A DNA stretch of 64,000 nucleotides from Macrostomum lignano (lineage: Eukaryota): NCBI GenBank assembly GCA_002269645.1, contig NIVC01001824.1:217621-281620 (forward strand). Direction: 5' to 3'. The translations under genes were made by a program, and so were the position numbers. Positions 1,081 through 59,164 of the stretch are shown here, one piece after another; within the stretch, counting starts at the first letter, position 1, and every line of letters starts with the position of its first letter. The notes under the pieces are model-generated. The model had not been told where the DNA came from and did no database searches. It saw only the letters and a list, made by a program, of their open reading frames with translations.

Positions 1081-2205
1081 CTACTGTTGTAGGAAAATCA
1101 TTTTGTCAAATTCAAAGTCATTCCTGTACAAACACAATTCCAGTAGCTTTATTATTTCAGCATCCGGTCTAATGGGATCCGGGTATCGGTTAAAGAATTC
1201 CTGGATCGCTGCAATGCCCTGATCTATTGGGATCATGGAGTACAGACTCTGGACATCACAGGTTGCCAGAGTCGAACCTTCCGTGCAGCTTTTATCCATA
1301 AGGTGTGCCTTGAAGTCATAGGAGTCCTTAATGAAAGTGGGTTGCGCTTGGGCAATCGGTTTAAGAAAGAAGTCTATGTACTTTTCTGCCCCAATTGCTT
1401 CAGAACTACATCCGCTCACAATAGGTCTGCCTGCTGGGACCCGAAAGGGGATCAGCCAGGTGGCTGGGTCCTTGTGAATTTTTGGGAGCAGGTAGAAATG
1501 CCGGGGACGGAAGTTCTCTCCAGGACAAAGAAATGCACACTGTTTCTGAGATATGAACTTTCTGTTACATAAATTGAGGAAGATCCCCCTGATAATTTCC
1601 GCAGTCTCGGGTTGCAGTGGCTGGTCCAGCTGTTGATAGGCATCAGTGTCAAACAGTTGGTTGTAGGCTGCAAATTCGTAGTCCTTAGGGTGCATGATGA
1701 CCACTGCGTTGCCTTTGTCCGCCTTTTTTATAAGGACGGAGCTGTTTCGCTTGAGCCTCTGAATCGCCCTGGTCTCTGGTGCCTCTAGGTTGCCTTTGAT
1801 CTGTACCGTTGTCAAATTCTCTACCAGATTTTGGTTCTCAAGTACCAACAAGTTGCACTCATCCCTTCTAAGTCTGAGGGGAACCTCCTTCCCTGATTTC
1901 CCGGTGAAGGGGGGCGGGCTGGTATTGGCGAGACCCCTCTTTTTGAAAAAGTCTTTCCAGAAAAGTTTACGATGAAATTCCGTCATGCAGTTCCTCAACT
2001 CATCGAAATCAAGGGCTTGGGTTGGGATAAAATTGAGTCCCTTATCTAGCAGCCTCGTCTCAGACTCGGAGAGTTTGAAGGTAGGGTGTAGATTTAAAAT
2101 GTTGCCTTCCAGTTTGGGAGGCCTACAGTAGTCAGCTAGTTTAAAGTTCTCAGCCAGGAAGCCAGCGCCAGTATAAAGTCCGGCGCTGAGAAGGATACAA
2201 TTGGT
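1081..2205 (-). CDS. PLE reverse transcriptase ORF2, N-terminal half only
   Basis: The frame is open from 2205 (upstream stop 2206-2208) to TAG at 1081-1083. It reads through RT motif A (CDVQSLY) to YRNDFEFDKMIFLQQ*. No GTAMG or YxDD motif follows in any frame I read. Confidence 0.85.
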   Translation of the reverse strand, partial: TNCILLSAGLYTGAGFLAENFKLADYCRPPKLEGNILNLHPTFKLSESETRLLDKGLNFIPTQALDFDELRNCMTEFHRKLFWKDFFKKRGLANTSPPPFTGKSGKEVPLRLRRDECNLLVLENQNLVENLTTVQIKGNLEAPETRAIQRLKRNSSVLIKKADKGNAVVIMHPKDYEFAAYNQLFDTDAYQQLDQPLQPETAEIIRGIFLNLCNRKFISQKQCAFLCPGENFRPRHFYLLPKIHKDPATWLIPFRVPAGRPIVSGCSSEAIGAEKYIDFFLKPIAQAQPTFIKDSYDFKAHLMDKSCTEGSTLATCDVQSLYSMIPIDQGIAAIQEFFNRYPDPIRPDAEIIKLLELCLYRNDFEFDKMIFLQQ

Positions 2206-3208
2206 TTAAGAGGAGGAGAGGCAATAAGAGTAACAGGTGAGAGTTTCTTACTCAGAGATTGAGTCAATTCTTCACCGCTGGCAAAGGACGGAACCAGAAG
2301 GATCTTACGTGTCAGACTGTCCGCTCTGAGTAGATCGATAGCCTCAGAGAGCAACTCTCGCCAGTGGTCTGTGCTGAGCAGCTCGTCCGGCAGGACCAGC
2401 ACCGTTGACTGAGCGCATTGCCGGTTCCGCAGGGCAGCCGACCTCAGTAGGGATGGTAAGGCTGACAGTGAGTACTCATGTACCTCTGTGATTGCCGGCA
2501 GTTTGAGGCCCTCGAAAGGCTTTGGGCAGAGTACCAGGTTCCGGCAGTCCCTGCTGATGATGAGCGAAACAGGTTGCTCAAAGGTGCTGGGTGAGTCATT
2601 CAGATGCGGCCTGTGGCGTTCCGGACCACCAGGGGAGTCTTCAGAGTCCGGCGATGGTAAGCGGCGTTTGGCAGGTGAAGCAGGCAGTCCCACCCGTGGA
2701 AGAGGCGGGGTCACAAAGAGGTCGTCAGCTGCCGACGTACAGCCGTTCTCAGGTGAGGCGACTTCGGTGGTCCCGCCTGCCGCCGGACTGCCGTCCGAAG
2801 CCGCAACCGCAGCCGCTGAGGGGTCGTTGCTGATCGTCGCATCGGCGCTCGCTGCCACGTCCCCGATGGTCGTCGCGCCGCCGTCCACTACCGAGTCGGC
2901 GTTGGTCTCCGTGCTCGTGCTTGCCGTGGGCTCATTGCTAGATGCTGCGATCGTGCTGGCTGTCGTGGTGTCGTTGTTGGAGCAGACGACCTCTGGGATC
3001 CTACGATGTTCGGCAGATTGGGCGCTCTCGTCGAGATCGACTGGTGCCATGCTTGCAGTCAGAGGGACTGCGGTGTTGGGAGTGGCTGTCTTGGTGGCAC
3101 TGGGTGCAGATGGGGCCAGGGAAGCCCCGGTGGCACCGGTGTTGGGATCTTCGTGAGTCCAGCGGAAGGTCAAGTTGAATCGGCGGCCACGTTTGTGGTG
3201 TTGCGGGG
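2136..3208 (-). CDS. PLE ORF1, 3' part, continuing after a one-base frameshift: AlkB terminal RFNLTFR motif, A/T/S-rich linker and C-terminal alpha/beta domain
   Basis: RFNLTFR (3182-3162) lies in the -1 frame just after HRIP. Adding one G to the run at 3205-3208 gives HRIPPQHHKRGRRFNLTFR, with the usual His-to-Arg spacing, and a 728-aa ORF1. Confidence 0.75.
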
Positions 3209-4321
3209 AATTCGATGAAAAAAGTTGGCCTGACAGTCGCCTGACATGGTCAGAAGACTGCCATGAAATAGATCGAGAGATAGACAAGGGGAGGTCGCTG
3301 ACTTAGCTTTTAGCTCGAAGGTTCTGGTGCACCCGATTGACACTGAAGCGATGAAGGGTCGTTCGCCAAGCACGGCTTCGTCATCGGCATGCCAGCCGAC
3401 GAATTGGGAGCCGTTCTGGTACACGTTGACGAGGACCGAGTTGAAGCGCTTTCCTGTCGCAGTTTCGACGGACTCGAGTAGAGGTTGGAGCCCTGAGGAG
3501 ATCGGCCCGTTTGATCGTAGTTGTCGACCCGAGTAGCTGTAGTCAGGGCCGAACCAAGCAATCAGTCGTGGTTCCGGTCGTCCTGACGCTGAAGAATGCC
3601 GATAGGCTAGGGGAGCGACTTCCTTGGCCAGGAATGACTCCAGTCGATCCGCTTGGTTCTTTTGCAGAAAGAAATTGTTCAGGCTGACAGTTGACTCGTC
3701 ATCTAGGTTCCAGAAGTCCGTGCCCTCCTGGCGCGGTTGAGATTCCTCCACCGAGGTCATGGTCGGTGCAGCAGCGGCAGGCGTAGCGAGTAGGTCAATA
3801 ACAGAGGGGTCATTAGACGGAGAATTCAACCGATCCAGAAATTTTGAGACGGTCGAGGCATCAAGTTTGCAGCGGAGGCCCACATGGTGGATGACTTGTC
3901 GCGCCACTGAGGCTAGATCTGGTGGTCCTTTGTCGTTACAGAGTTGTCGCAGTAGATTTTCAGACTCTTCGGTTGCCGCATCGTAGTGTGTCAGGATCTT
4001 CAGTAGTGAGCTCTCGATGTGGGCAACATTCGCTGCCTGTAGGTCTTGTAGGAGTTTGTCGGACGCGAATGCAGGGCGAAAGGCCTGGTCCAGTGATCGT
4101 GCGGCTTGTTGAAGAGAGCCATAGGCCCGTTGTGGCTCGACAATAATAGATTCGATGACTGCCCGATGGTGGTAGCATCTCAGGAGTTTGTCCAAAAGCA
4201 GTCTGGCTTGTTTGGAGGCGTCATCCAGGTGTTCGTTCTTTCTAGGTTGTCTCCTGTTCTGTTTTTGGTAGTTACTGTTGTAGAACGTGCGACCTCTCCA
4301 TCTCCTGGAGGGATTCTCCAT
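3170..4321 (-). CDS. PLE ORF1, 5' part: basic N-terminus, helical region and AlkB/2OG-Fe(II) dioxygenase domain
   Basis: ATG at 4321. AlkB motifs PRLIAWFG-YSYSG, FNSVLVNVYQNG, GWHADDE (His 3391-3389, Asp 3385-3383), IASVSIG, HGSLLTMSG and FFHRIP (His 3217-3215). Confidence 0.85.
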   Translation of the reverse strand: MENPSRRWRGRTFYNSNYQKQNRRQPRKNEHLDDASKQARLLLDKLLRCYHHRAVIESIIVEPQRAYGSLQQAARSLDQAFRPAFASDKLLQDLQAANVAHIESSLLKILTHYDAATEESENLLRQLCNDKGPPDLASVARQVIHHVGLRCKLDASTVSKFLDRLNSPSNDPSVIDLLATPAAAAPTMTSVEESQPRQEGTDFWNLDDESTVSLNNFFLQKNQADRLESFLAKEVAPLAYRHSSASGRPEPRLIAWFGPDYSYSGRQLRSNGPISSGLQPLLESVETATGKRFNSVLVNVYQNGSQFVGWHADDEAVLGERPFIASVSIGCTRTFELKAKSATSPCLSLDLFHGSLLTMSGDCQANFFHRIPRNTTNVAADST

Positions 4322-4364
4322 AGTATGATGCACGGGCACTAGAGCAAGCTAGGCATAGGCAGGA

Positions 4365-4860
4365 GAGAGGTAGAGAGGTAGAGAGTGAGAGGGAGACAGG
4401 TAGAGGGGAGAGGGAGACAGGTAAAAGGGAGAGGGAGACAGGTGAAAGGGAGAGGGAGACAGGTGAAAGGGAGAGGGAGACAGGTAGAGAGTGAGAGGGA
4501 GACAGGTAGAGGGGAGAGGGAGACAGGTAAAAGGGAGAGGGAGACAGGTGAAAGGGAGAGGGAGACAGGTAGAAAGGGAGAGGGAGACAGGTAGAGAGTG
4601 AGAGGGAGACAGGTAGAGAGTGAGAGGGAGACAGGTAGAGGGGAGAGGGAGACAGGTAAAAGGGAGAGGGAGACAGGTGAAAGGGAGAGGGAGACAGGTG
4701 AAAGGGAGAGGGAGACAGGTAGAGAGTGAGAGGGAGACAGGTAGAGGGGAGAAGGAGACGGGTAGAGGAAAGAGGGTGACAGGTAGAGGGAGAGGGAGGC
4801 AGGCAGAGGGAGAGGGAGGCAGGTAGAGAGAGAGAGGGAGAGAGAGAGAGCAAGAAGCGG
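4365..4860. repeat. About 21-bp polypurine minisatellite (GGGAGAGGGAGACAGGTRAAA-like) directly upstream of PLE ORF1
   Basis: Tandem units visible in the sequence. Confidence 0.9.
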
Positions 4861-5458
4861 GGAGTTGGAGTCCACGATTTTACGTTTCCTTTTTTATTCT
4901 GTTTGAGTAGGAAATTCTGAAAAGACTGTTAAAATTGGAAATGCAGGTATAAATTCGAGTCTGCAATACTATTTAATTTAGTTACACGCCTCCCGTCAAC
5001 TGAATGCCTGTCCGTGAACAGGGAAGCCTCCCATTGGCTCTATAGTGGTCAACAATGGCGCACTGGAAAATCTTTTTGCCCTGCTTGCGCTGGAGATTCG
5101 AGTGAAAAAGAGTAAGATAAAAATTTCAAGCCAAGGTGGTTGAATTTGCGATTGCCATGATTTGATGATAATTGGTTTTCGGAATTACCTGTAATTTACT
5201 ATAAAAACTGATTCTTAAAAGCAATATAAATCTTGTTACTATCAACCTGTTTATGGATTGTCTCTAATTGGAATATTTGCGTGTATGGCATCTCAATATT
5301 GCGAAGTAACTGTCTATCCGTAAGTACTGCTGTTGCACCGTCCTTTTAGCTGACTTCTAATGCGGCTGCCTTTTGCTATCCTTATGCTTATAAAGACTGT
5401 GAACCAATCATTTGTGAGCTGTCCCTATCCAGTAACTGTTCATTGTCCCGATTTTAAT

Positions 5459-5985
5459 AGTGTCCACTATCTCTATCCAGAGAGTGTCCACTATCTCTAT
5501 CCAGAGAGTGTCCACTGTCTCTATCCAGAGAGTGTCCACTGTCTCTATCCAGAGAGTGTCCACTGTCTCTATCCAGAGAGTGTCCACTGTCTCTATCCAG
5601 AGAGTGTCCAGTATCTCTATCCAAAGAGTGTCCGCTATATCTATCCAGAGAGTGTCCACTATCCCTCTCCGAAGAGGGTCCACTATCCCTATCCCAATAG
5701 TGTCCACTATCCCTATCCCAATAGTGTCCACTATCCCTATCCCAATAGTGTCCACTATCCCTATCCCAATAGTGTCCACTATCCCTATCCCAATAGTGTC
5801 CACTATCCCTATCCCAATAGTGTCCACTATCCCTATCCCAATAGTGTCCACTATCCCTATCCCAATAGTGTCCACTATCTCTATCCCAAGAGCGTCCACT
5901 ATATCTATCCAGAGTGTCCACTATCTACATCCCAAGAGTGTCCACTATCCTTATCCCAAGAGTGTCCACTATCCCTACTTCTTGT
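5459..5985. repeat. 24-bp minisatellite (AGTGTCCACTATCYCTATCCMRAK), two variant blocks
   Basis: Tandem units. They account for the VHYLYPES/VHYPYPNS pseudo-ORFs. Confidence 0.95.
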
Positions 5986-6108
5986 GTCTATTGCCACTAT
6001 ACAATTGATGCTCTAAAGAACCCGGCCTATTAAATAGCATGCATTTTAGCATCAAATCCCAACACATTGCTGCAGCCAAACTAATTACCAATTTTTTACC
6101 TGACGCAG

Positions 6109-6420
6109 GTTTGACCTTAACCGTAGGCAGCCAAGTTTGGTCGTCAGAGTCAGGAACTGATAGAAGAGAGAGTCAGCAGGATCAGAAGCTTGACCAAGTG
6201 CCCCTAGCACCCGGAGATTACACGTTGTTAATAAAACTGTCCCATAGCAACGGTGTCAGGAATTGCAATTATTCAACAGCAATTACGGAGAAATCGAACT
6301 CGATGCGGTTCAAGCTGATCAGCTTAGCTGGCGGAGTCAAGCAGGTGGCAATTCTGGGACGAGGGAAGCGTCTGCGACTTCCCGTGTGGCTGGGTGCTGA
6401 CCTGGATGTTGATGAGGGAG
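6109..6420 (+). CDS. Filamin-like gene, exon
   Basis: Acceptor GACGCAG| at 6108, donor GAG|GTGAGC at 6421, PLAPGDYTLLIK motif. The phase-1 end joins in frame to the next exon (DVDEG-GPSATVQDPAG). Confidence 0.5.
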
Positions 6421-6529
6421 GTGAGCGCACGGCCAGGGGTTGCTCTGCTAATTTAATTGTTGAGATTGACTTTAATCTCATGATTGATCCTAGAATTGAT
6501 ACTTAGTATCGATTTCCCATTTGATAAAA

Positions 6530-7290
6530 TGTCAGATCCCATACTTGATCCCATATCTGATCGCATATCTGATCCCATATCTGATCCCATATCTGATCTC
6601 ATATCTGATCTCATATCTGATCCCATACTTGATCCCATATCTGATCCCATACCTGATCCCATATCTGATCTCATATCTGATCCCATATCTGATCCCATAC
6701 TTGATCCCATATCTGATCCCATATCTGATCCCATATCTGATCCCATACCTGATATCATATCTGATCTCATACCTAATCCCGTAACTGATCCCATATCTGA
6801 TCCCATATCTGACCCCATACCTGATCCCATATCTGACCCCATATCTGATCCCATATCTGACCCCATACCTGATCCCATATCTGATACCATATCTGACCCC
6901 ATACCTGATCCCATATCTGACCCCATATCTGATCCCACATCTGATCCCATATCTCCTGACCTGAACTCTGTAGGATCAAATATGGGATCTCCATGGGATC
7001 TCTATGGGATCAAATATGGGATCTCCATGGGATCTCTATGGGATCAAATATGGGATCTCCATGGGATCTCTATGGGATCAAATATGGGATCTCCATGGGA
7101 TCTCTATGGGATCAAATATGGGATCTCCATGGGATCTCTATGGGATCAAATATGGGATCTCCATGGGATCTCTATGGGATCAAATATGGGATCTCCATGG
7201 GATCTCTATGGGATCAAATATGGGATCGAATATGGAATCAAATATGTGATCTTTATAAGATCAAATATAGGATCTCTATCGGATCGCTCC
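6530..7290. repeat. Intronic 12-bp (GATCCCATATCT) array followed by an opposite-polarity GGATC-based array
   Basis: Tandem units. Polarity switches near 6960. Confidence 0.9.
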
Positions 7291-7340
7291 CAAAAGTTTG
7301 ATCCCACAGAAATCCCCAAATCCCAAATCCAACCCCCCAG

Positions 7341-7893
7341 GCCCATCGGCAACAGTGCAAGACCCAGCCGGCCAGGTCCGTCCTTGTCAGCTACGTCGAC
7401 TCGCCGACGGTCGCCTCGCCATCGCCGTTTCGCCGCTTCGGCCCGGCCGGCATCGAGTCCAGCTGCTGCAGGGCGACAGTCAAACCCGACGTCTCAGCCG
7501 ATTTGTCGATGTCGACTTCTCGCCTAGAGACCTCGCCGACGCCAGTCGAGTTCGCGTCGAGATCGACGGCCAGGGCGACGAAAAGTTCATCTGCTACGCT
7601 GGCGAGCTCTTCCGGTTGGGCGTCGACGTGTCCGAGGCCGGCTTTGGCCGGCTGGTGGCGTCCGTGTCCGGGCCTGGCCGAACCCGCGTCGACATCGAGG
7701 CCACTGCCGATGGCGAACCGACGACGGTAAAGCCGAGAAACCCTTGTGTTGGATTTGTTGCTTGGCAACTGAGCCGGGCGACTATAGGCTGTCGGTGACT
7801 TACGGCGACGATCACGTGACCGGAAGTCCCTGGCAGCTGAAGGTGCTGCCGGCACCGCCGCCGCCGCCGCCTCCACCGCAGCAGCAGCCTCTG
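7341..7893 (+). CDS. Filamin-like gene, exon with Ig-like filamin repeats and a one-base frameshift at about 7718
   Basis: VQDPAG..DGRLAIAVSPLRPGRHRV and FRLGVDVSEAGFGRLVASVSGP, then in the shifted frame TEPGDYRLSVTYGDDHVTGSPWQLKV. The 3' donor (GTTATT) is weak and tentative. Confidence 0.7.
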
Positions 7894-7959
7894 GTTATTG
7901 AAATGCGATTTCTTTGAAATGTGTACTTTTAGATGGAATGCGCCTTGTTGCAGACTCTG

Positions 7960-8295
7960 TTCCCTGATTAGTCTCAGAGATCCCATCATTCGTCTCATAG
8001 AGATCCCAACATTAGTCTCATGGAGATCCCAATTATTAGTCTCACAGAGACCTAAATCATTTGTCTCATAGAAATCCCATCATTAGTCTCATATAGATAC
8101 TATCATTAGTCTCACAGAGATCCCAATTATTAGTCTCACAGAGATCCCAATTATTAGTCTCATAGAGATCACAATCATTAGTCTCACAGAGACCTCAATC
8201 ATTTGTCTCATAGAAATCCCATCATTAGTCTCATAGAGATCCCATCATTAGTCTCATATAGATACCATCATTAGTCTCACAGAGATCCCATCCTT
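7960..8295. repeat. Intronic minisatellite of about 25 bp (ATCATTAGTCTCAYAGAGATCCC-like)
   Basis: Degenerate tandem units. Confidence 0.85.
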
Positions 8296-8379
8296 GATCT
8301 CGCGGACAGATCCCAACAGTAATTTCCCGCCCTCTGAGCACAATCCCGGAAGTCGCTCATGCTTCAATCACCTTTGCAG

Positions 8380-8998
8380 CCCCTCTCGAAAGCGACCTCA
8401 GTCAGCTCCGGCCTGCTGCGCAATCGCATCAACCAGCCGAACAGGTTCACCGTTAGTCTGGTGGCCTCCGCCGACCGGACTGCGGACACCGCGTCGGATC
8501 TTGCCGTGACGATCGAAGGCCCTTCAAAAGCTCGCATCGACGCCGAGGATGGAGGCCGCGAAATCTGCTGGACGGCGAGTCGACCTGGCGTCTATCGGGT
8601 CGGCGTCGCTGTCGACTCCGTGCACGTGGACGGATCGCCTTGGCTGGTTGAACTCTGCGAAGATGTCGATGAAGACGGTGTCCTTGACAATGTCCAGCCA
8701 ATGCGTTCCTGTCGATGCCCGCGGGCCTGCGTTGTCGGCCTGGACGATGCACCTGTCGGTGTCGGTTCAACGTCGAGCTTTCGTTTGATGACTTGTCATC
8801 GACAAGTTGACGTCGTCTCCGTCTGTGTAGACGGTCCGGCCAAGTGTCCGAGCCTGATGGCCAAGTGGCTGGATAGCGGAGAGGACATTGGGGACTGCTT
8901 GGCCTGCTACGAGATCGTGTTCTCGCCTGAGGCTGCCGGGGTGTACAAGCTGAGTGTGCAGTGCGGCTGGGGTGCGAGCTGCCTGCGGGATGTTGAAG
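8380..8998 (+). CDS. Filamin-like gene, exon
   Basis: NRFTV..LAVTIEGPSKARI..PGVYRVGV..VHVDGSPW and VCVDGP..YEIVFSPEAAGVYKLSV. Donor GAAG|GTAGGA at 8999. The acceptor is approximate. Confidence 0.75.
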
Positions 8999-9029
8999 GT
9001 AGGACTGCCGCTCCGTGTCTGCTGGATTG

Positions 9030-9310
9030 CGGTGTCTGTAGCTGAGTGTCTGTAGCTGAGTGTCTGTAGCTGAGTGTCTGTAGCTGGTGTAGGATATGTC
9101 TGTAGCTGATGTAGGATGTGTCTGTAGCTGATGTAGGATGTGTCTGTAGCTGATGTAGGATGTGTCTGTAGCTGATGTAGGATGTGTCTGTAGCTGGTGC
9201 AGGATGTGTCTGTAGCTGGTGCAGGATGTGTCTGTAGCTGGTGCAGGATGTGTCTGTAGCTGGTGCAGGATGTGTCTGTAGCTGGTGCAGGATGTGTCTG
9301 TAGCTGATTT
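9030..9310. repeat. Intronic 24-bp repeat (TGTGTCTGTAGCTGRTGYAGGA-like)
   Basis: Tandem units. Confidence 0.9.
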
Positions 9311-9372
9311 AGGATGCGTGTCTGTCTGTCCGCCAGTCGCTGCAGTCCAACAATATCTTTATCATCTTTTAG

Positions 9373-9722
9373 GATCTCCATTTCAAATAAAAGCAGCCAC
9401 AGCCTCAGCTGCAGCTCACCGGGTGGTTTGCACCGGCTGTGCACTTCGCGACGCCTCAGTCGGTCGAGTTTCCGTCATCACCGTCGACGCCAGACAGGCT
9501 GACAGCGTCGCAGCGGCTGCAGAGCAGGGGCTCCGAGCGAAACTGCTGGGACCATCTGGATTGGCTTCGGGTCCGGTTGAAATCAGAAAGCTGTCTTCCG
9601 CCGGGGTGTACAGTCTGTCCTTCACCGCGGCCGAAGTTGGAAGTCACCGGTTAGTGGTCACGTGGGCCGGCTGTCACGTGACCGGGTCTCCGTTTCAAGT
9701 TCGGGTTAGATCGGATTTGTAG
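9373..9722 (+). CDS. Filamin-like gene, last coding exon
   Basis: Acceptor TTTTAG| joins in phase 1 to give DVEGSPFQI. A full repeat follows: VVCTGCALRDASVG..LLGPSG..GVYSLSFTAAEVGSHRLVVTWAGCHVTGSPFQVRV..*. Confidence 0.85.
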
Positions 9723-9894
9723 GTTTATAATGATCTGAATTGCTGGCTACATTATCTAAAAGACCAATTAGATATGTACGAGTATGGCATCTATAAGGTC
9801 GATATAAACCTATAGAATACCTTAAAGTACATATTTATATATACGGTAGCTACAACGTCATTTTATTGCCTGAAAATTACTGCTAACCTTAACC

Positions 9895-10116
9895 ATTTAA
9901 CCCTAACCAGAGACAACCCTAACTCTAACCTACTCCCCAACCCCAACCCTAACCTAAACCCCAACCCTAACCTAAGCCCCAACCCTGACCTAAACCCCAA
10001 CCCTAACCTAAACCCCAACCCTGACCTAAACCCCAACCCTAACCTAAACCCCAACCCTGACCTAAACCCCAACCCTGACCTAAACCCCAACCCTGACCTA
10101 AACCCCAACCCTGACC
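9895..10116. repeat. Telomere-like 18-bp repeat (CCCTRA-CCTAAA-CCCCAA)n
   Basis: The G-rich strand reads TTGGGG-TTTAGG-TYAGGG. Confidence 0.9.
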
Positions 10117-11449
10117 TAGTCATGCGTCGGAGCTCATGATCTAAGACCCAATGATAACTTTAGCAACCGAAAGTTTAAGAACCGAATTTTTTAAAGCTAA
10201 GAGCTTGCTAAAACTTTGCTTATACAGTTAAATATATTTTTTAAACTTTTTTCTGCCAGTTTTCAGGCTTCCATATGCCGCCGCCTTTTAATGATTCATC
10301 ATTTTCGTTTATTCCCGTTGCACTCGCAACTTTACGCAGTAAATGAATATGCGAGATTTAAGAAGTTTTCATCGATAAATAACTAGTTGCAAATAAATTC
10401 CCTATGTCTCTGCTTGCACTATAGCGTTTTCAATTTTATACTACTACACAAAGCTAAATAAGTAGTCCACATCGTTTATTTGTGGCGGAATTTAGATTTT
10501 TTTGCAGGAAATTTATTATTTAATTGGCAATTGACGCTCAGTTTATGATTATTAATAAATAAGTATAAATAAATATATTAGCTAATTCATTCTCTGTTTG
10601 CCTTGTCTAGTTCACACCCAACAACGAATTGCAATTATATATTATAAATAGATATAATTGTTTTATCAAATTTAATTTAAACAAAATAAAACACCAAATG
10701 AAATTATTACAAGACTTATGCATTGAACTGCATTGCAACAAGGATATAAATAAAGTGGCATTTTCAAAAGTAAATATGTTCAGTTGATCACATCAGAACA
10801 AAGAAATAGTTTTTTATTACAAGCAAAAAAGTCATTTCTACGAGCTACTCGTAATTTTTCGTTTGGCAAAAAATTTAACGATTTGTTCAAATTCACATTC
10901 ACAAACAATTTATCAAATGCTACAAGCCTACATGCATAGCATTGTTAATATGATAAAAGCAGAGCATTGATGCTATGGTCATTTTTACAACGAAGCTCAA
11001 CACTACTGACGGAAATTATAATTTTTGTTATAATTTTTGTAAACAAAAAACTACTGATAAATCAGGAACAAGCACAGTTTAGACAAAGTATTACTAATTA
11101 GTAGTAATTTGTTCAGACAGACAATACATAGTAATGGGACGATTCTGTTTCTATCTTGAATTAACGCCAAAATATTCGTTAATTTGTACGGCTTTTAACC
11201 TACTTGTGGTAAGTAGTATAAAGCGTAGTTATCAATCAAGAGTACTGTAAGAATTAACAATCTACAACCATTTCTTCTAAGAAAATTGTAGTTTTTATCT
11301 AATTTTTAGGAATAAGCGTTCTCTCACGCCATTTTGGATGGATTATTTTTGACAATGTGCTCGTATGTACAGTTTTTTAGCAGGATTTTGGCGCCAATTT
11401 TAAACTATCATCTTATATTATTTAGACGGTTGTCTACTTTGCACCTGCA

Positions 11450-12269
11450 CTAACGAAACTGAGCCAACTCCATGGAGCAACCGTTGCCAACCATGTAGCT
11501 GGCAGCATTGCGGATGTTGCTGACCGACCCGCTGACTGCAGGCTGCCCTTTCGACGAGCTGCCAGTCAGAAGCGACACCGGCAGCGGCTGCTGATGCTGC
11601 TGTCTTCGAGTTGGCAGCATCGGACTGGCACTGGCGTGTCGCTGGTGCAGCCGCTGAAGCTGCTGTCGCTGCCGCGGCTTCCAAGCGCAGCTTCCCGTCG
11701 ACTGCTGATGTCGCTGCCTGTCGATGGTCTCCGACTTCAGCCGGACAACGTCGCGAACAATCTGATCAATCTGCCACAGATCCTCGAGGCCAGAAGTCTT
11801 TTTATCGACATCGTTGCCGCTCGACGAAGAGAAAATCGTCGTCAAGTCGAGCGTCGACACGTCCAGATCGTCGGCGTCGCCTGGCAGCAGCGGCAGCGAC
11901 GGCGGCTGCCAGCGGCGAGCCTCCTGACTGTCGCGTGTGCCGCAGCAGCCGAGCAATCGGTCGATGTCTTCCTCACGGACCGCCCACTGCAGCTGGTGCA
12001 TGTCACTGCCGGTCTCAATGTCTGAGCCGTAGCCGCTTGAGACGGAAGGCTGCTGCGGCTGCTGCGGCTGCTTCTGGCTTTGCAGACCGTACAGCCCGAC
12101 TGGCTGGCTTGCTGGGCCGCCGCTGTTGCAGCACCTGTTGGACGCCAGTGGGTTTCCATTTGGTGAGTCTGCACTGTCTGCGAGTAACTGTCTGTTTGAA
12201 CCAGAATAACTGGGTCCTTTTGTGTACAACCGCTTGGGGTACTCGCTCAGGGAGTGCAACATGTATCTG
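11450..12269 (-). CDS. Unknown Q/A-rich protein, terminal exon
   Basis: Acceptor GTGCAG| is phase-compatible (phase 2) with the donor at 12730. Long open frame to the stop at 11450. Confidence 0.55.
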
Positions 12270-12294
12270 CTGCACGAACTCTCCATCCCTTCAG

Positions 12295-12730: not shown

Positions 12731-13458
12731 CCAGTCCCAGCCGAACACCGCATCTCAGCCGCCTCCTGCGGACACTGGAATCTGACAGTCCTTGCGCTGG
12801 CGCTCTTCATCAGCCGCTGACACTGTTCCTGCTGCTGCCGCAATTGCCGCTTCGTCTGCTGCTGCTGCTGACGCGCTGGCTGCATCGGCGAGTCGAACTC
12901 CTCGGAGTTTGGACATCCGCCGAGCCTGTGACAGAACGCCCACCTTGTGTAGTCATAGTCTCCATTGGCGTAGACTCCTTCAATGTCGCCGGAGCCAGCG
13001 GCGGCTGCAGAGCACTGTCGGCGAAGAAGGTCGCTGCCGCTCTCCGCTTCCGGCCCGCTGCCAAGCTGTCGACGGTGAGTCGACGAGCAGGAAGCCGACC
13101 GACGAAACGATGTCGGCAGAAGAAGTCGAGCCAGACGTTTCCCGAGCGTCCCTGGCTGCTGCTGCTGCTGCTGTTTCTTTTGCTTCTTCTGCTCCTGCAG
13201 CATCGATTTGGTGTTGAGTTTCGGTGACGCCAACGGCGGTGGTGGCGGAATTTCGGCGTAGACGAAGCCGTCGTCCTCGCAGCCTGCCGCTGCCGTTGTC
13301 TCCACGGCTGCCGCAGCTTCCATGGCGGCGATTCGGCCGAGGAATGAAGACCGCAGCACCGCAGTGGTTGGCGGCTGCTGCTGCTGCTGCCGCTGCAACA
13401 GCGGATGCTGGAAACTGTCGCTCCAGCTGGATGAAGCCACACCGTAAGACTGTTGCAT
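12731..13458 (-). CDS. Unknown Q/A-rich protein, upstream exon
   Basis: 243-codon open frame, donor TGG|GTGAGA at 12730, poly-Q tracts. The true start may lie in a further exon. Confidence 0.55.
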
Positions 13459-13949
13459 TGCTCAGCCAATCAGCCCGTTTTGTTTAACTGTTTTTGTTTG
13501 GAATGAAAGTTGAACTGTGTGAGGCGCAAGAGTCACCTGATTCAATAGTTCCGAGACAGTTTAGCCCTATGATAAATGTCTTTGACTGACAAAATCAGAC
13601 TCATCCAGCTAACCCCAATTCAATCGTCAGGTCCTTGATAGTCAGTAGCCTGATCAAATCTCGAATAGTCACTTCAACAGCAATCCTCGCTTATACTGTA
13701 TACATATATGTGTGTACGTGTATGAATCTCCCTTGGGAATATGTTCTATTTTATGCTTTTAGCGCGAGTTCGATCACGTGATGCCTAAACGCCCCTCCCA
13801 GGACTCAAAGACGAGTCAGTCGACTTTCTGATGTCTAATCTCGTTGATTATTGTGTAGATTGAATTTAATCAGCTGCTGGTAAGCTGTGACTCAGCTTCT
13901 GTGCCGCATCGGCATCTGTTCGAGGGCGAAGGAGAAAATCAGTACCACA

Positions 13950-14565
13950 GGCTACTCAGTCATCCAGGCTACTCAATCACTCAAACTACTTAGCGACTCA
14001 AGCTACTCAGTCACTCAGGCTACTCAGTCACTCAAGCTACTCAGTCACTCAGGCTACTCAGTCACTCAAACTACTTAGCGACTCAAGCTACTCAGTCACT
14101 CAGGCTACTCAGTCACTCAAACTACTTAGCGACTCAAGCTACTCAGTCACTCAGGCTACTCAGTCACTCAAACTACTTAGCGACTCAAGCTACTCAGTCA
14201 CTCAAACTACTTAGCGACTCAAGCTACTCAGTCACTCAGGCTACTCAGTCACTCAAACTACTTAGCGACTCAAGCTACTCAGTCACTCAAACTACTTAGC
14301 GACTCAAGCTACTCAGTCACTCAGGCTACTCAGTCACTCAAACTACTTAGCGACTCAAGCTACTCAGTCACTCAGGCTACTCAGTCACTCAAACTACTTA
14401 GCGACTCAAGCTACTCAGTCACTCAAACTACTTAGCGACTCAAGCTACTCAGTCACTCAGGCTACTCAGTCACTCAAACTACTTAGCGACTCAAGCTACT
14501 CAGTCACTCAAACTACTTAGCGACTCAAGCTACTCAGTCACTCAGGCTACTTAGTCACTCAAGCT
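13950..14565. repeat. 17-bp minisatellite with three variants forming 51-bp and 34-bp higher-order units
   Basis: Variants CTACTCAGTCACTCAGG, CTACTCAGTCACTCAAA and CTACTTAGCGACTCAAG. Confidence 0.95.
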
Positions 14566-15337
14566 ATTTATATAGATCACCTTTTCTAGTAAAATTTAGA
14601 ACGGAACAGAATGATGGTAAGTGCAAAAATATTTTCTACAACTGTTTTACAGTAAACACTAAAATAATTTTATAGTGCAGCTAACAGTTAAAAACGTCAA
14701 GATACTAACTTGACAGCAGCAAACTGACTGACTGATTGACAGGTTTTTAGTTGTCAATCACTGCTAGGAAGCTTACTACATTATGCTATACTTATATTGA
14801 AAGCCCCGTGCACACCTGCGATCATACAATAGAAATCTATCATGCAACTGAAATGAACAAAGCAAGGGATTGACCTATTCAATATGAAATGTGCTGACTT
14901 AGTCACAGACAGGCTTTTTGCCAGTTTAACTACCCGCCTCAAGCTTCTGACGCAGGCATAAATAATGCAATACCGCTGACTGCATGATTTCTTGATTTGA
15001 GCTTACAAATATAATTTGTAAGCTCATTTCACAAAAAGCACTGATTATAAAACACGGTTGAATCAGTCACCAATGTTTTTTCTTTGCTGCTTTTATCCCC
15101 CTATAAATCAGTTGAGCACGACTAAGGAATAATGGCCCACACATGCATGTATGATTGCTCATATTGTTAGGCTGGAATTTTTTCTTTTCTTCAATCAAGC
15201 AATAAATCAAAAAGTCTTCAATGTCTGACAGCTTGTTGACATTTTCATATATGCACAGCTATATGCTTGCAGAATAGAGAGGAACCATGGACCTTTTGAG
15301 TATACTTGGACTGGGTCGTTTTTTCTGTACAACCAAG

Positions 15338-15946: not shown

Positions 15947-16519
15947 AGCAATGATTTCAGTATATTAAATGATTATAGAAGCAGCACATGTCAATTGAAG
16001 CAACACTGGAGGCCTTGCTTTGTTCCCCGAACAGGAGCTGGGCCGCAGCCGTGAGTGAATCACGTGACACACAGCGTGACAAGAGATGACAGCGCGCAAT
16101 TTTTATGACTTATAGCCGCTCCACCCCGTGTGACTGATCACTTTTTGGTCCCCGTACTGTGTGGAATGGGTTGAATTTACGCAGGTAATAATGTATGTGC
16201 ACTGGATCATGCTAATGCCAGGGTTAGAGAGGATTCCTAGAGGAGAGTGCAGAGAAGTGATGACGTCAATAACACTGGGGTAGAGCTCTGAGCTCAGAAG
16301 GAGCTCGGGGGACAGGGGAGTGACAGAATGCTGCGATTTTTACTCTGTCTGATTTATTAATGATTTTTTATAGAGAAGTCTCCAACCCCCCCCCCCCTGA
16401 TCAGACTGTTAGACATGTTCGTTTTCGTGCAGAAATTAAATTAGACATTTCAAAACATTTTCTACATTTTTTCACTATTGATTTGGCCACTTCTCTCTAT
16501 AAAGTTGCTAGTAGTTCAC

Positions 16520-17280
16520 TCCCTCTCTACTTCTCTGCCTACCCTCTCTACTTCTCTGCCTACCCTCTCTACTTCTCTGCCTACCCTCTCTACTTCTCTG
16601 CCTACCCTCTCTACTTCTCTGCCTACCCTCTCTACTTCTCTGCCTACCCTCTCTACTTCTCTGCCTACCCTCTCTACTTCTCTGCCTACCCTCTCTACTT
16701 CTCTGCCTACCCTCTCTACTTCTCTGCCTACCCTCTCTACTTCTCTGCACTCTGCCCTCCCTTCTCTATTTCTCTACCTACCCTCTCTACTTCTCTGCCT
16801 ACCCTCTCTAATTCTCTGCCCTCCCTTCTCTATTTCTCTATCTCCCTTCTATACTTCTCTGCCTACCCTCTCTACTTCTCTGCCTACCCTCTCTACTTCT
16901 CTGCCTACCCTCTCTACTTCTCTGCCTACCCTCTCTACTTCTCTGCACTCTGCCCTCCCTTCTCTATTTCTCTACCTACCCTCTCTACTTCTCTGCCTAC
17001 CCTCTCTAATTCTCTGCCCTCCCTTCTCTATTTCTCTATCTCCCTTCTATACTTCTCTGCCTACCCTCTCTACTTCTCTGCCCTCCCTTCTCTACTTCGC
17101 TGCCCTCCCTTCTCTATTTCTCTACCTACCCTCTCTACTTCTCTGCCTACCCTCTCTTTTTCTCTGCCCTCCCTTCTCTATTTCTCTACCTACCCTCTCT
17201 ACTTCTCTTACTTCCCACTCTACTTCTCTGCTCTCTCCTCTCTACTTCTCACTTTTGGTTTAACCACTTCTATCTCTTCC
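16520..17280. repeat. 21-bp polypyrimidine minisatellite (CTCTCTACTTCTCTGCCTACC) with an internal block duplication
   Basis: Tandem units. Confidence 0.95.
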
Positions 17281-17589
17281 CCTTTCATTCTCTCTCAAAC
17301 TCTATCTTAAGCGGTACGTTAATTAATTTTTTAATAAAAATATTATCATTGTTGCCTCACAAGCCCTCTTCAACTCCGGATACAGTAGAATTATATGGCT
17401 TATTATTCAATTTTCAGCTAAATTCTTATTATAAAGCTTACAATTATTACTTTTACGTTCCTCTTCTCAATAAGAAGCTATCTGACAATAAAACTGCTTT
17501 TGAGTTTGTGAGTCAGTGGCTGCCGACACAATGAAACCGTCCCGGTGCCTTGGAGAGGGCGAAATTTGGAAAAAAAGACGCATCACAAA

Positions 17590-17870
17590 CTTGAATCTGC
17601 CTCCCTCAATCTGCCTCCCTGAATCTGCCTCCCTGAATCTGCCTCCCTGAATCTGCCTCCCTGAATCTGCCTCCCTGAATCTGCCTCCCTGAATCTGCCT
17701 CCCTGAATCTGCCTGCCTCAACATGCCTCCCTGAATCTGCCTCCCTGAATCTGCCTCCCTGAATCTGCCTCCCTGAATCTGCCTGCCTCAATCTGCCTCC
17801 CTGAATCTGCCTCCCTGAATCTGCCTCCCTGAATCTGCCTCCCTGAATCTGCCTCCCTCAATCTGCCTCG
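17590..17870. repeat. 14-bp minisatellite (CCCTGAATCTGCCT)
   Basis: Tandem units. Confidence 0.95.
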
Positions 17871-17965
17871 GTTCTGAATCGGTGCCTGAAAAAATGTCCT
17901 TATTACTTCTAGACATTCAACGCTCTGCAATCTGCACTTGCAACACAGTATATTATAAAGAATTA

Positions 17966-18097
17966 CTGTTGCTAAAAGTTTGGCATACAATGAAATATTG
18001 TGTAACAGATGGGTCGCGGCAGTACACACTGCAGCTTATCGACCTCCCTGAAGGATTGAACGACCTCCCTGATTGTATGCCAAACTTTTAGCAACAG
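17966..18097. mobile_element. MITE with perfect TIRs and TA flanks (Tc1/mariner-like)
   Basis: TTACTGTTGCTAAAAGTTTGGCATACAAT (17963-17991) has an exact reverse complement at 18072-18100. TA lies on both sides of the CTGTTG...CAACAG termini. Confidence 0.65.
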
Positions 18098-18100
18098 TAA

Positions 18101-19035
18101 CACATCCGGTTCCGAAACAGTTACATCCAGTTCCGAAACAGTCACATCCGGTTCCGAAACAGTCACATCCAGTTCCGAAACAGTCACATCCGGTTCCGAA
18201 ACAGTCACATCCGGTTCCGAAACAGTCACATCCGGTTCCGAAACAGTCACATCCAGTTCCGAAACAGTCACATCCGGTTCTGAGACAGGCAAATCCGGTT
18301 CCGAAAAAATCACATCCGGTTCCGAGACAGGCAAATCCGGTTCCGAAAAAATCACATCCGGTTTCGAGACAGGCAAATCCGGTTCCTAAACAGTCACATC
18401 CGGTTCTGAGACAGGCAAATCGGGTTCCGAAACAGTCACATCCGGTTCTGAAACAGGCAAATCCGGTTCCGAAACAGTCACATCCGGTTCCGAAACAGTC
18501 ACATCCGGTTCCGAAACAGTCACATCCAGTTCCGAAACAGTCACATCCTGTTCCAAAACAGTCACATCCGGTTCCGAAACAGTCACATCCGGTTCCGAGA
18601 CAGGTAAATCCGGTTTAGAAACAGTCACATCCAGTTCCGAAACAGTCCCATCCGGTTCCGAAACAGTCCCATCCAGTTCCGAAACAGTCACATCCGGTTC
18701 CGAAACAGTCACATCCAGTTCCGAAACAGTCCCATCCGGTTCCGAAACAGTCACATCCGGTTCCGAGACAGGTAAATCCGGTTCCGAAACAGTCACATCC
18801 GGTTCCGAAACAGTCACATCCAGTTCCGAAACAGTCCCATCCGGTTCCGAAACAGTCACATCCGGTTCCGAAACAGTCACATCCGGTTCCGAAACAGTCA
18901 CATCCGGTTCCGAAACAGTCACATCCAGTTCCGAAACAGTCCCATCCGGTTCCGAAACAGTCACATCCGGTTCCGAGACAGGTAAATCCGGTTCCGAAAC
19001 AGTCACATCCGGTTCCGAGACAGGCACATCCGGTT
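18101..19035. repeat. 21-bp minisatellite (CCGGTTCCGAAACAGTCACAT)
   Basis: Tandem units with variant GAGACAGGYAAAT. Confidence 0.95.
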
Positions 19036-19787
19036 CTGCAGTCTAATTAGCTTAAAAACCTTGGAACGTCAGCTTAGAAGCGGAGCGATTCCCAAGATTA
19101 ATTGGCTACTGAATGCAAGCTGCAGACTCTGCAAACTTCACCTGCAGCTTATCCTGACTAAATGGGCGCCTTCACTCCGAACAATTAGCAGAAGTTCACT
19201 TTTCAAACCACCCCCATCCCAATTTGCAGCCAAAAATATTTCCCTGCTTTTCTTAGACTCGACTTCGCTGTTTGGTGAAAACGCGTTCCAGAAATTAGCC
19301 AGCAGAAATTCTTCAACAAGCTGCACTTTGCGTGCCTCTGTTAAGGTGTTAAACTGCAGTCGTTCTGTTTCAATTCTTTTTGACACGCGCCTTTGAGGAA
19401 CAGACCACCCTTGGGGGGGAGAAGTTTTATGGGGCGCTGACTTTTTATTGTCGCCTCGCCAAGTTCTTTTGAAGTTTACCGTTCTGTGCAGTTTAATAAT
19501 AATAATAATAAATAATTTTAATAAAATAGTTAAGCGCGGCAGTCAACCCTGGCTCTTCAACCCAGCGGGTGGTTTAAAAGGCTGTTCTAATAGCTCTCTC
19601 CCTTGTTTTATATACCACAGTTCAATATAAACCATGGACTGCTAATTGGCTATATCGCCTTTGGAATGGTCGTCATTTTAGCGCCTGTATAATATAGGAG
19701 AGTCGCAATAAATTCTGACACCTTTATTATTCCCCCAGTCTGGCGTGTAAACTTCATTTGTACGAAAAACTCTGCCACATCTATCAA

Positions 19788-25700: not shown

Positions 25701-26116
25701 GACCAACTCAAGAAGAATATCCTGACCTATGCTCACAGAAAAGCCTGACCAACTCAAGAAGAATATCCTGACCTATGCTCACAGAAAAGCCGGACCAACT
25801 CAAGAAGAATATCCTGACCTATGCTCACAGAAAAGCCGGACCAACTCAAGAAGAATCCTGACCTATGCTCACAGAAAAGCCGGACCAACTCAAGAAGAAT
25901 ATCCTGACCTATGCTCACAGAAAAGCCTGACCAACTCAAGAAGAATATCCTGACCTATGCTCACAGAAAAGCCTGACCAACTCAAGAAGAATCCTGACCT
26001 ATGCTCACAGAAAAGCCGGACCAACTCAAGAAGAATATCCTGACCTATGCTCACAGAAAAGCCTGACCAACTCAAGAAGAATATCCTGACCTATGCTCAC
26101 AGAAAAGCCTGACCAA
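19788..26116. repeat. About 6.3-kb satellite of 44-bp and 46-bp units (CTGACCTATGCTCACAGAAAAGCCKGACCAACTCAAGAAGAAT[AT]C), roughly 140 copies
   Basis: Period 44 measured directly (AGCCTG at 20101 and 20145). There are no spacers. Confidence 0.98.
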
Positions 26117-57285: not shown

Positions 57286-58155
57286 TTTTGTTTCAATGCG
57301 AGAGGCCTTGGCAATAAGCAGAGCTTCAGCTTTAGCTTTTATTTATCGTCTATTGAAGATCGAAACCAACGAAGCGAGAGCGGCCGCGGCAATCAAATTT
57401 ACAGCCTCGGGGAGGGAGCTGTGGACGGTCGAGACCGGACTGGTTTAGGGGAGAGCCGAATTTTATGAGGGGGGGGGGGAAGAGGGAAGAGAATTGAAGA
57501 CCACGAGTATAGCTACGCTAGAGCTAGGGAGAGAGAGAGCGCGAGGACTGGCTTGGGGGGGGGGGCAACACTGCGATGCCGGGCAAGAAAACGAGGTAAA
57601 GGGTTCTTCTGGGCTGAGGGAGAGAGGGTTGATTGACGTGTTTTGCTTTATCCTTACCGCTACTGCTGCTGCTGCTGAAGAACTGAAGAAGGGCTTCCTT
57701 CTTCCTCTTTTACTTCTTCAATTCTGGTTAAAAGGCGCAGTGGAGAAGACGTTGCTTCCCCCCCCCCCGATGGAGGTTAACGAACAGAAATCGAAAAGTG
57801 CAAAATCGTGTTTATTGCTCTGAATGCCAGATGCTGGCGGCTCCAATCGATCACTTCAGTTAAATTCGGGCGCGCTTGAGCCTTTGGTGGCTCAGTAAAA
57901 ATGCTTCAAGTGGCCATCAGTGCAGTGTAAAGTCCTCTGGTCTCTATCGTTTGAGAGGAGGCCTTAGAAAGCTTAAAGGCTTGCTAAAAGAGTTTAAGGG
58001 CTTGGCCTAGTCAGTTTATATACACCGAGGCGGGCAGGCTTACTAACATTACTTTGCTATACATGCTAGCTCGTAGGCTGTAGGCTAAGGCTTTAGGTAC
58101 ACTATCGGATTACCTGCTGAGCTGTCGTGCCATACGAGTATTGAACGACTACGAC

Positions 58156-58690
<535 letters not shown>

Positions 58691-59164
58691 AAGTACTCTT
58701 CTCATGGACAGAGGGTGAGAGAGATTATAGTAGAGAATTCATGAATAGATAAAAGCGAGTGGGTAAAAAAGATATTATGGAGTGAGAGAAACAGAATCAT
58801 AAAGAGAAAGAAAGACATAGAGAGAGAGAGACGTAGAGAGTCATAGAGACAAGGGGAGAGTCATAGAGAGGGAGTCATAAAGAGGGGAGAGTCATAGAGA
58901 GCGGTGTTGCGGAAAAGCGATCTCAGTGTACTTCTTTACTATACGTTCATCCATAACAATTGCTATTGATCAGCTCTCCCTCTCTCCCTCTCAAATGTAC
59001 GAATGTACTTTGCTGCGTTAGCCCGCCTCTATGTGTACATTTAACCTTCAACTTAGCTACTCATACAAATATCGCGGTCGGTGGCTTGGAGTGAAGTCAC
59101 GTTTTTGTTTTCTTCGCATATCTTAAAGTTTGCAAACCACGAGTGATTCAGCAAATTCTCTACA

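Follow-up and report, generated by a model that had tools for sequence, protein, structure and literature searches.

An AlkB-type dioxygenase domain in ORF1 of a Penelope-like retroelement of Macrostomum lignano and its predicted frameshift link to the reverse transcriptase

The AlkB domain of ORF1 and the element copy at the locus

A Penelope-like element (PLE) of the flatworm Macrostomum lignano was analysed in a stretch of 64,000 nucleotides from contig NIVC01001824.1 (assembly GCA_002269645.1, positions 217,621 to 281,620 of the forward strand); this whole stretch is called the window, and positions given without a locus number refer to it. An earlier interpretation made from the letters alone (the sequence-only reading) had proposed that the element carries an ALKBH2/3-type AlkB nucleic-acid demethylase in its first open reading frame (ORF1), directly upstream of the reverse transcriptase (RT). 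This was borne out by a Pfam match, by RT motifs downstream and by full-length paralogs. The parts of the copy are listed below (aa, amino acids; pLDDT, predicted local distance difference test; AF2, AlphaFold2).

1086 to 4392, minus strand: PLE copy, 3.3 kb of a 4.94-kb family unit, delimited by nucleotide homology
4322 to 4392, minus strand: 5′ leader upstream of the ORF1 ATG; homology to full-length copies begins at 4392
2136 to 4321, minus strand: ORF1, 728 aa once repaired (ATG at 4321, TAG at 2138-2136)
3788 to 4222, minus strand: N-terminal all-helical domain of ORF1 (aa 34-178), also present in PLE ORF1s without AlkB
3147 to 3724, minus strand: ALKBH3-like AlkB dioxygenase domain (aa 200-392), from Pfam, PDB phmmer and AF2/Foldseek
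2571 to 3146, minus strand: low-complexity Ala/Ser/Thr/Pro-rich linker (aa 393-584), predicted disordered, pLDDT about 35
2139 to 2570, minus strand: C-terminal alpha/beta region of ORF1 (aa 585-728), at the position of the GDSL/SGNH esterase of relatives
2139 to 2145, minus strand: slippery heptamer U_UUA_AAC, read in the zero frame of ORF1 and followed at once by its TAG; predicted -1 site
1084 to 2145, minus strand: ORF2 fragment of 354 aa in the -1 frame, with PLE N-terminal and RT motifs up to RNDFEF

The window fragment of ORF1 matched the Pfam family 2OG-FeII_Oxy_2 (PF13532) with E=1.3e-24 and 87.9 bits, the curated cut-off being 31.2 bits; the intact protein, which corresponds to the repaired 728-aa ORF1 for which this check had been proposed, matched with E=1.6e-28 and 100.7 bits. 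The protein search was carried out with the AlkB domain alone; the whole ORF1 as a query was swamped by low-complexity words. When the domain was searched against the PDB with phmmer, human ALKBH3 was the best match (E=1.7e-29), followed by ALKBH2 (7.5e-16), and E. coli AlkB and ALKBH5 were found at about 1e-3 only (ALKBH5 about 3e-3). The same order was obtained by Foldseek with the predicted fold (aa 200-392, pLDDT 92-98), ALKBH3 coming first (E=1e-20, template modelling score 0.83-0.89) and ALKBH2 next. The domain is of the ALKBH2/3 type on these comparisons, and its double-stranded beta-helix fold is predicted to superpose on ALKBH3 and ALKBH2.

The Fe ligands were located at H311 (3391-3389), D313 (3385-3383) and H369 (3217-3215), and the two arginines of RFNLTFR at R381 (3182-3180) and R387 (3164-3162). 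In a 61-sequence AlkB alignment these residues, together with N299/Y301, occupied invariant or near-invariant columns. The full motif set claimed from the letters (HxD, distal His and RxNLTFR with both Arg) was present at the coordinates checked, though split by a frameshift in the window. Human ALKBH3 (PDB 2iuw, 8jnk, 8jnr) has HxD...H, NxY, RxxxxxR and PRLxAW(Y/F)G in common with the PLE AlkB but is only 35-37% identical to it over the aligned fold, and the PLE domain is embedded in a 728-aa multi-domain protein.

As assembled, ORF1 is split over two frames (3170-4339 and 2136-3287), and alignment with an intact paralog traced the split to one C missing from a C-run at about 3209. The repaired length is that of four intact annotated M. 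lignano paralogs (g1, g3, g4 and g5; P0001, P0391, P0393 and P0394). The window ORF1 matched the annotated protein BOX15_Mlig007645g3 at 99%, and the window's own 383-aa fragment shared a 90% protein cluster with the intact 728-aa paralogs. The 1-bp deletion falls between H369 and R381; it parts the Fe-binding residues from both Arg, and the window copy as assembled thus cannot encode a functional enzyme. In an older public gene model of 1309 aa (P0395), host exons of the window (e.g., ORF 11450-12286) are fused to ORF1 over about 2136-12286 on the minus strand; this fusion model is an annotation artefact.

For the remaining parts of ORF1, comparison was made with related loci (L numbers) taken from Logan, ENA and NCBI records, including SRR19430222, ERR14788467, GCA_029980145.1 and SRR31628392. 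The N-terminal domain was 23-30% identical to that of L002, L003, L006, L007, L060 and L063 and had R, HH, PA and K as invariant residues; the linker (aa 393-584) could not be aligned between lineages. In the AF2 model, which had little alignment depth outside the AlkB domain, the N-terminal domain formed 7 helices (pLDDT 44-72) and the C-terminal region a beta/alpha pattern (pLDDT 45-69). No Pfam match was obtained for the C-terminal region of M. lignano ORF1, and the esterase blocks I (GDS), III (GxND) and V (DxxH) were absent from this region in M. lignano, L002, L003 and L004. The label of a degenerate esterase was tried and dropped (hhalign against GDSL domains, E=0.29); position and the low-confidence beta/alpha pattern suggest a possible common descent of this region and the esterase.

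A PLE-type RT on the same strand downstream of ORF1 had been claimed and was found, with the PLE N-terminal and RT motifs KGLNFIP, ADKG, LPKIHK and GRPIVSG; that the window RT is truncated and ORF1 broken had gone unrecognised. The nearest homologs were GIY-YIG/DUF8422/HTH_animal proteins. A stop codon at 1083-1081, at the point where homology to the family also ends, closes the ORF2 frame short of GTAMG, which was found in full copies together with YIDD. The copy was 99.4-99.5% identical at the nucleotide level to L001 9931-13244, with unrelated flanks on both sides, and homology was lost at about 1075-1086, equal to unit position 3305 of 4970. Absent from it are the rest of the RT (GTAMG, YIDD), the GIY-YIG nuclease and the 3′ untranslated region with a hammerhead-like motif; no GIY-YIG domain was found within the 64-kb window, for which the truncation of the PLE copy accounts, and no upstream pseudo-long terminal repeat (pseudo-LTR) was found around the copy. 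The window copy is a 3′-truncated, frameshifted, dead fragment.

The full-length family and the ORF1/ORF2 junction

Three full-length M. lignano paralogs (L001, L008 and L009), 98.7-99.4% identical, defined the unit as ORF1 plus RT plus GIY-YIG; the sequence-only reading had correctly described RT with GIY-YIG as the canonical PLE protein, and both were present in these paralogs. In L001 (NIVC01001946.1), 8464-9959 repeats 13404-14900 at 99.9%, giving a unit of 4940 bp in a pseudo-LTR arrangement with a 5′-truncated copy directly upstream of the full copy. L008 and L009 likewise had an upstream partial tandem. Because the truncation points of L001, L008 and L009 differ (unit positions 3474, 4181 and 3921), the three are independent insertions. 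Among the printed flanks, CT-type repeats bordered L001 at its 5′ end, L008 at both ends and L009 at its 3′ end, and at least two full-length copies sit in CT-type microsatellites. ORF1 is flanked by the pseudo-LTR junction and the RT in all full-length copies and is therefore part of the transposing unit.

Beyond the point where the window copy ends, the ORF2 of L001 has YIDD, then a CX2-5CxxC linker and lastly a GIY-YIG domain, in which Cys stands between GIY and YIG. The linker cysteines read C-GSSR-C-KC-C in M. lignano and CX2-4CxxC in L003-L007, and the nuclease residues IIYGISCNQCHPGKIFYVGMT...H of L001 were kept in 7 lineages (CCHH). The longest open ORF2 stretch among the M. lignano copies was 657 aa, in L008b. 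All frame lesions of the M. lignano copies were single-base deletions, at unit positions 2351, 2598, 2649, 2738, 2784, 3092, 3667 and 4192 in the ORF2 of L001, L008 and L009 and at window position 3209; long-read assembly error is thus as live an explanation as real decay. Within ORF1, 8 nonsynonymous and 8 synonymous changes were counted among the M. lignano copies, giving a dN/dS of about 0.34 (one-sided p=0.03). A comparison of indel counts between ORF1 and ORF2 as a selection signal was discarded: three copies had been found via their intact ORF1 proteins, and the comparison is therefore biased by ascertainment.

At the junction of the two frames, TTTAAAC was found in the X_XXY_YYZ register in every lineage checked, 0-2 codons before the ORF1 stop (13 in L006). 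In a DNA alignment of nine junction sequences the heptamer columns were invariant and the flanking bases variable, and L063 had the identical site. The -1 frame is open for 744-766 aa through the RT and the endonuclease (EN); its conserved residues NLHP and KGLNF(IP) precede its first Met, so the frame cannot start by itself. On sequence grounds the junction is a predicted signature of programmed -1 ribosomal frameshifting, and it predicts two products, one being ORF1 protein by itself and the other AlkB fused to RT and EN. A stimulatory stem-loop or pseudoknot would be expected at a spacing of 5-9 nt; only small hairpins were found in the M. lignano subclade, 10-16 nt beyond the heptamer. According to a figure legend in PMC8557442, a frameshift with a pseudoknot can set a PLE ORF1 apart from the RT. 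The PLE lineages supply a clean natural set of UUUAAAC frameshift sites.

These observations bear on whether a host ALKBH2/3 gene and an unrelated PLE insertion lie side by side by chance. Such a juxtaposition would agree with the public annotation, in which the gene is an ordinary hypothetical protein or Fe2OG dioxygenase and P0395 joins ORF1 to host exons. However, the ORF1 plus ORF2 unit recurs at several loci with unrelated flanks, ORF1 lies between pseudo-LTR and RT, the frames overlap at a conserved slippery site, and the same architecture occurs in other samples. Chance juxtaposition is refuted by the repeated unit, the pseudo-LTR placement and the conserved frame overlap, and we give it almost no credence. 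Nor is the AlkB the single-copy host ALKBH2/3 gene: it is multi-copy and lies inside a transposing unit, as the sequence-only reading would have it.

Close to its 3′ end the M. lignano unit has a hammerhead-like motif, found with a hand-made pattern, GGC-CUGACGA-A-GAGCC-CAGA-GGCUC-GAA-ACCGGU-A-GCC, which carries an extra A after CUGANGA (CUGANGA...GAAA pattern). It was found at the following positions.

L001 9851 and 14792: hammerhead-like motif
L008 6850 and 11793: hammerhead-like motif
L009 6850 and 11791: hammerhead-like motif
L002 1711: hammerhead-like motif
L039 729 and 5891: hammerhead-like motif

L002 and the distant L039 had the identical layout, with helices I, II and III differing but compensating, and helix III was a palindromic hexamer in three PLE lineages (ACCGGU, ACGCGU or ACAUGU). 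The Rfam hammerhead models gave no match in any locus, either at gathering or at E<=10, and the motif did not occur in the window. Dimer-forming mini-hammerheads have been described for PLEs, and the layout of the M. lignano motif, a candidate hammerhead, fits them.

Around the window copy, a CT-rich tandem array (21/106-bp) at 4361-4841 abuts its 5′ side, and an 84-bp tandem repeat (2.6 copies) at 829-1047 lies directly past the end of RT homology. At 5459-7227 and at roughly 16000-26000 and 58000-60000 there are many further tandem arrays, with periods of 12, 24 and 34, as well as long stretches of extreme strand skew, in which GC skew reaches -0.43 or +0.63 and AT skew 0.45. Host genes flank the insertion: filamin/ABP280-repeat ORFs at 7298-9722 on the plus strand, and a 484-aa Cys-loop ligand-gated ion channel subunit, apparently intron-less, at 55831-57285 on the minus strand.

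AlkB and esterase modules across PLE lineages

L002, L003, L004 and L063, whose RTs were 48-51% identical to that of M. lignano, had AlkB at the matching place in ORF1, on the strand of the RT and upstream of it, and so did L006 (RT 42%) and L060, which was found via its AlkB protein P0242. This makes seven AlkB-bearing PLE lineages in all, M. lignano and six others (RT 39-51% identical); L006, L007 and L060 had tandem copies. The co-occurrence of AlkB and RT, which had been set down for checking, held for every M. lignano copy examined and for the six other lineages, whether these were found via the RT or via AlkB. The ORF1 alignment fell into four parts: a common N-terminal helical domain, AlkB (in the seven lineages), unalignable linkers and a C-terminal domain. 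HxD, the distal His, NxY and RxxxxxR were retained in every AlkB-bearing ORF1 aligned, and in the L060 family 6/6 variable residues lay in linkers (p=0.003). The signals of selection on ORF1 appear consistent but small. Neutral evolution of the domain does not fit these results, the catalytic residues being kept amid unalignable linkers and the dN/dS of the M. lignano copies being as given above.

The same results bear on the view that AlkB is a functionless passenger, either a decaying captured host exon or an RNA-binding scaffold. The frameshift of the window copy lies inside the AlkB domain, neighbouring PLE lineages manage without AlkB, and the adjacent esterase position lacks catalytic motifs in the M. 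lignano subclade, all of which a passenger would allow. Against this, the metal and 2-oxoglutarate ligands are intact in seven lineages whose linkers cannot be aligned, the variable sites of the L060 family avoid the AlkB domain, and four annotated M. lignano ORF1s are intact. We therefore regard a passenger as very unlikely.

A GDSL/SGNH esterase without AlkB was found in the ORF1 region of L005, L007, L010-L014, L016, L019 and L024, and both AlkB and esterase in L006 and L060. The GDS, GxND and DxxH blocks were intact in the ORF1 C-terminal domain of L005, L006, L007, L010 and L060. This distribution over the lineages suggests a stepwise gain and loss of modules. Among metagenomic PLE loci from an RT-alignment scan, at least 8 of 50 had a GDSL esterase in ORF1.

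Phylogeny, a check that had likewise been proposed, was run by neighbour joining (NJ) for RT and AlkB. In the NJ tree of the RT, built on the fetched loci, M. lignano, L004, L002 and L003 formed a clade with 100% bootstrap, and the positions of L005, L006, L007, L010-12 and L060 were not fixed. An NJ tree of 273 AlkB domains (100-200 bootstraps) joined L006 and L060 at 100% and gave the other relevant groupings 48% or less, so the AlkB tree settles neither orthology to animal ALKBH3, as against a bacterial or other origin, nor the donor, nor the choice between single and multiple acquisition.

AlkB was also seen outside PLEs. Locus L061 (1752-7556, Logan SRR31628392), from the same sample as the AlkB-PLE L063, is an APE-type long interspersed nuclear element (LINE) whose 843-aa ORF1 has an N-terminal AlkB followed by CCHC zinc knuckles; its ORF2 has Exo_endo_phos_2 and RVT_1. 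The M. lignano UniRef protein P0265 has an AlkB similar to that of this LINE, P0272 resembles it, and P0281 is likewise listed. An AlkB module common to the two retroelement classes, PLE and LINE, is hinted at by these loci; the AlkB tree gives it no support.

Relation to known elements and the possible role of AlkB

We consider it probable that the region is a copy of a recently active Neptune/Nematis-type EN-bearing (EN+) PLE whose ORF1 AlkB would demethylate the RNA template or cDNA and would be fused to the RT by frameshifting. The Neptune/Nematis label is based on linker and nuclease motifs, the RT tree comprising the fetched loci. Neptune/Nematis EN+ PLEs (PMC5408684, citing Arkhipova 2006; PMC8557442) have the same RT N-terminal motifs and YIDD, the same C-terminal GIY-YIG with a Cys between GIY and YIG and the same CX2-5CxxC linker, as well as the same pseudo-LTR tandems, microsatellite targets and frameshift-separated ORF1; a dimer-type hammerhead near the 3′ end may be a further likeness. 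PMC5408684 also reports an esterase in Neptune-like PLEs; the sequence-only reading had the RT and GIY-YIG core of a PLE right and missed this esterase. The sister lineages L005, L007 and L010-L012, with the N-terminal domain and a GDSL esterase in ORF1, resemble these esterase-bearing elements. Unlike Neptune-like PLEs, the present element has an ALKBH3-like dioxygenase between the N-terminal domain and the esterase position, and its M. lignano subclade lacks the esterase motifs. We thus describe a conserved enzymatic module, AlkB, that is new to an otherwise known type of element; the esterase and the frameshift-separated ORF1 had been reported before.

A parallel is found in Ty3/gypsy elements of the orchid Phalaenopsis, which encode an AlkB that demethylates N6-methyladenine (m6A) RNA in vitro (PMC9289625). 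There too a retrotransposon lineage has fixed an AlkB in an accessory ORF, proposed to act on its own RNA. The orchid element is an LTR element of a plant, whereas the M. lignano element is a PLE of an animal; the orchid AlkB resembles plant m6A RNA demethylases and is a separate ORF2 expressed apart from Gag-Pol, whereas the PLE domain is ALKBH3-like and lies in ORF1, upstream of the RT and coupled to it by the predicted frameshift. Esterases in the ORF1 of CR1/L2-type LINEs and, in Athena/Terminon PLEs, accessory GDSL and DEDDy ORFs (PMC3905857, PMC5408684) follow the same principle of an enzymatic accessory module in a retroelement ORF, and of modules common to several retroelement classes, but are lipid/ester hydrolases or exonucleases, whereas the PLE module is a nucleic-acid demethylase by type. 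Plant RNA viruses (Alpha-/Betaflexiviridae, Closteroviridae) also have AlkB inside the polyprotein of an RNA-templated replicator; they use an RNA-dependent RNA polymerase, whereas a PLE is a reverse-transcribing nuclear element, and the likeness is one of architecture, not of compared AlkB sequences. In the full-text literature searched, which left out most subscription journals and Repbase, no paper with AlkB in a PLE or LINE was found, and the orchid Ty3/gypsy elements were the only transposable elements (TEs) with an encoded AlkB.

In the mechanism that we favour, most ribosomes would halt at the ORF1 stop and yield free ORF1 protein, and a minority would slip by -1 and yield an ORF1-RT-EN fusion in the fashion of Gag-Pol, which would keep AlkB attached to the polymerase on the RNA of the element itself. 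AlkB would then oxidatively strip methyls of the base-pairing face (1-methyladenine, m1A, and 3-methylcytosine, m3C) from the single-stranded RNA template or nascent cDNA. Such lesions, which may arise from alkylation damage or host marking, would be hard stops for reverse transcriptases, and their removal would give more full-length cDNA in target-primed reverse transcription. It is known that ALKBH3 prefers single-stranded DNA and RNA with m1A or m3C, that tRNA sequencing uses AlkB pre-treatment since m1A and m3C block RTs, and that the accepted role of AlkB in plant flexivirus replicases is the removal of m1A/m3C damage from genomic RNA. Because of the substrate preference of ALKBH3, the use of AlkB for RT read-through of tRNA and the role of the flexivirus AlkB, it is plausible, by analogy, that the PLE AlkB clears RT-blocking m1A/m3C from element RNA or cDNA; the affinity to ALKBH3 rather than to ALKBH5/FTO favours these substrates over m6A.

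The domain might instead serve an epitranscriptomic counter-defence, erasing a host m6A or other regulatory mark from element transcripts. The in vitro activity of the orchid Gypsy AlkB on m6A (PMC9289625), the control of retroelement RNA fate by m6A in mammals (PMC7873242) and the intact catalytic residues of the domain would agree with this. However, by sequence ALKBH3 (E 1e-29) and ALKBH2 (1e-16) are far nearer to the domain than ALKBH5 is (about 3e-3), likewise by fold, and it is the orchid and plant enzymes that are said to resemble plant m6A RNA demethylases; sequence gives the substrate without certainty. We regard this alternative as unlikely. About equally improbable in our view is an action on host molecules or on the integration site, such as tRNAs, host RNAs or alkylated single-stranded DNA at the nicked target. 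ALKBH3 in general acts on single-stranded DNA and tRNA, and with inefficient frameshifting most of the product would be free ORF1 protein, but the conserved frameshift predicts AlkB covalently joined to RT and EN, as would suit an action in cis.

Several results weigh against the favoured account of a template-demethylating AlkB fused to the RT. The window copy is dead, its RT being truncated and its ORF1 frameshifted; no M. lignano ORF2 inspected was free of 1-bp deletions, and a demonstrably intact autonomous copy was not seen. The dN/dS figure is built on 16 substitutions. No significant RNA structure was found 3′ of the slippery site when compared with shuffles (z-scores -0.9 to +0.7; pseudoknots were outside the model). 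AlkB occurred in 0/50 metagenomic PLE loci and is thus dispensable for PLEs in general, and outside the M. lignano subclade the AlkB-bearing lineages were not clearly monophyletic on the RT tree. The PLE and LINE AlkBs formed one 12-member group on the NJ tree with 3% bootstrap. Finally, the substrate and the benefit proposed for the PLE AlkB are inferred.

A wider proposal is offered tentatively: that an active ALKBH3-type demethylase has become fixed in the ORF1 of an animal PLE clade and of one or more APE-type LINE lineages, that in PLEs it is frameshift-fused to the RT, and that its task would be to strip m1A/m3C from the template. If this is true, base methylation of retroelement RNA, whether as damage or as a host restriction mark, would be a real in vivo barrier to reverse transcription, against which retroelements evolve erasers. 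Accessory enzymes fixed by retroelements reveal limiting steps of their life cycle, and the retention of AlkB across divergent PLEs, partly in a predicted RT fusion, suggests that reverse transcription in animals is limited by methyl lesions on single-stranded RNA or cDNA. TE-encoded AlkB would then extend beyond one orchid Ty3/gypsy lineage and plant RNA viruses to animal PLEs and LINEs, by convergent or shared capture of a module. Public databases label ORF1 as a host Fe2OG dioxygenase, and a TE-protein label is due instead. The element offers a compact natural pairing of AlkB and RT in M. lignano, an experimentally tractable flatworm with transgenesis.

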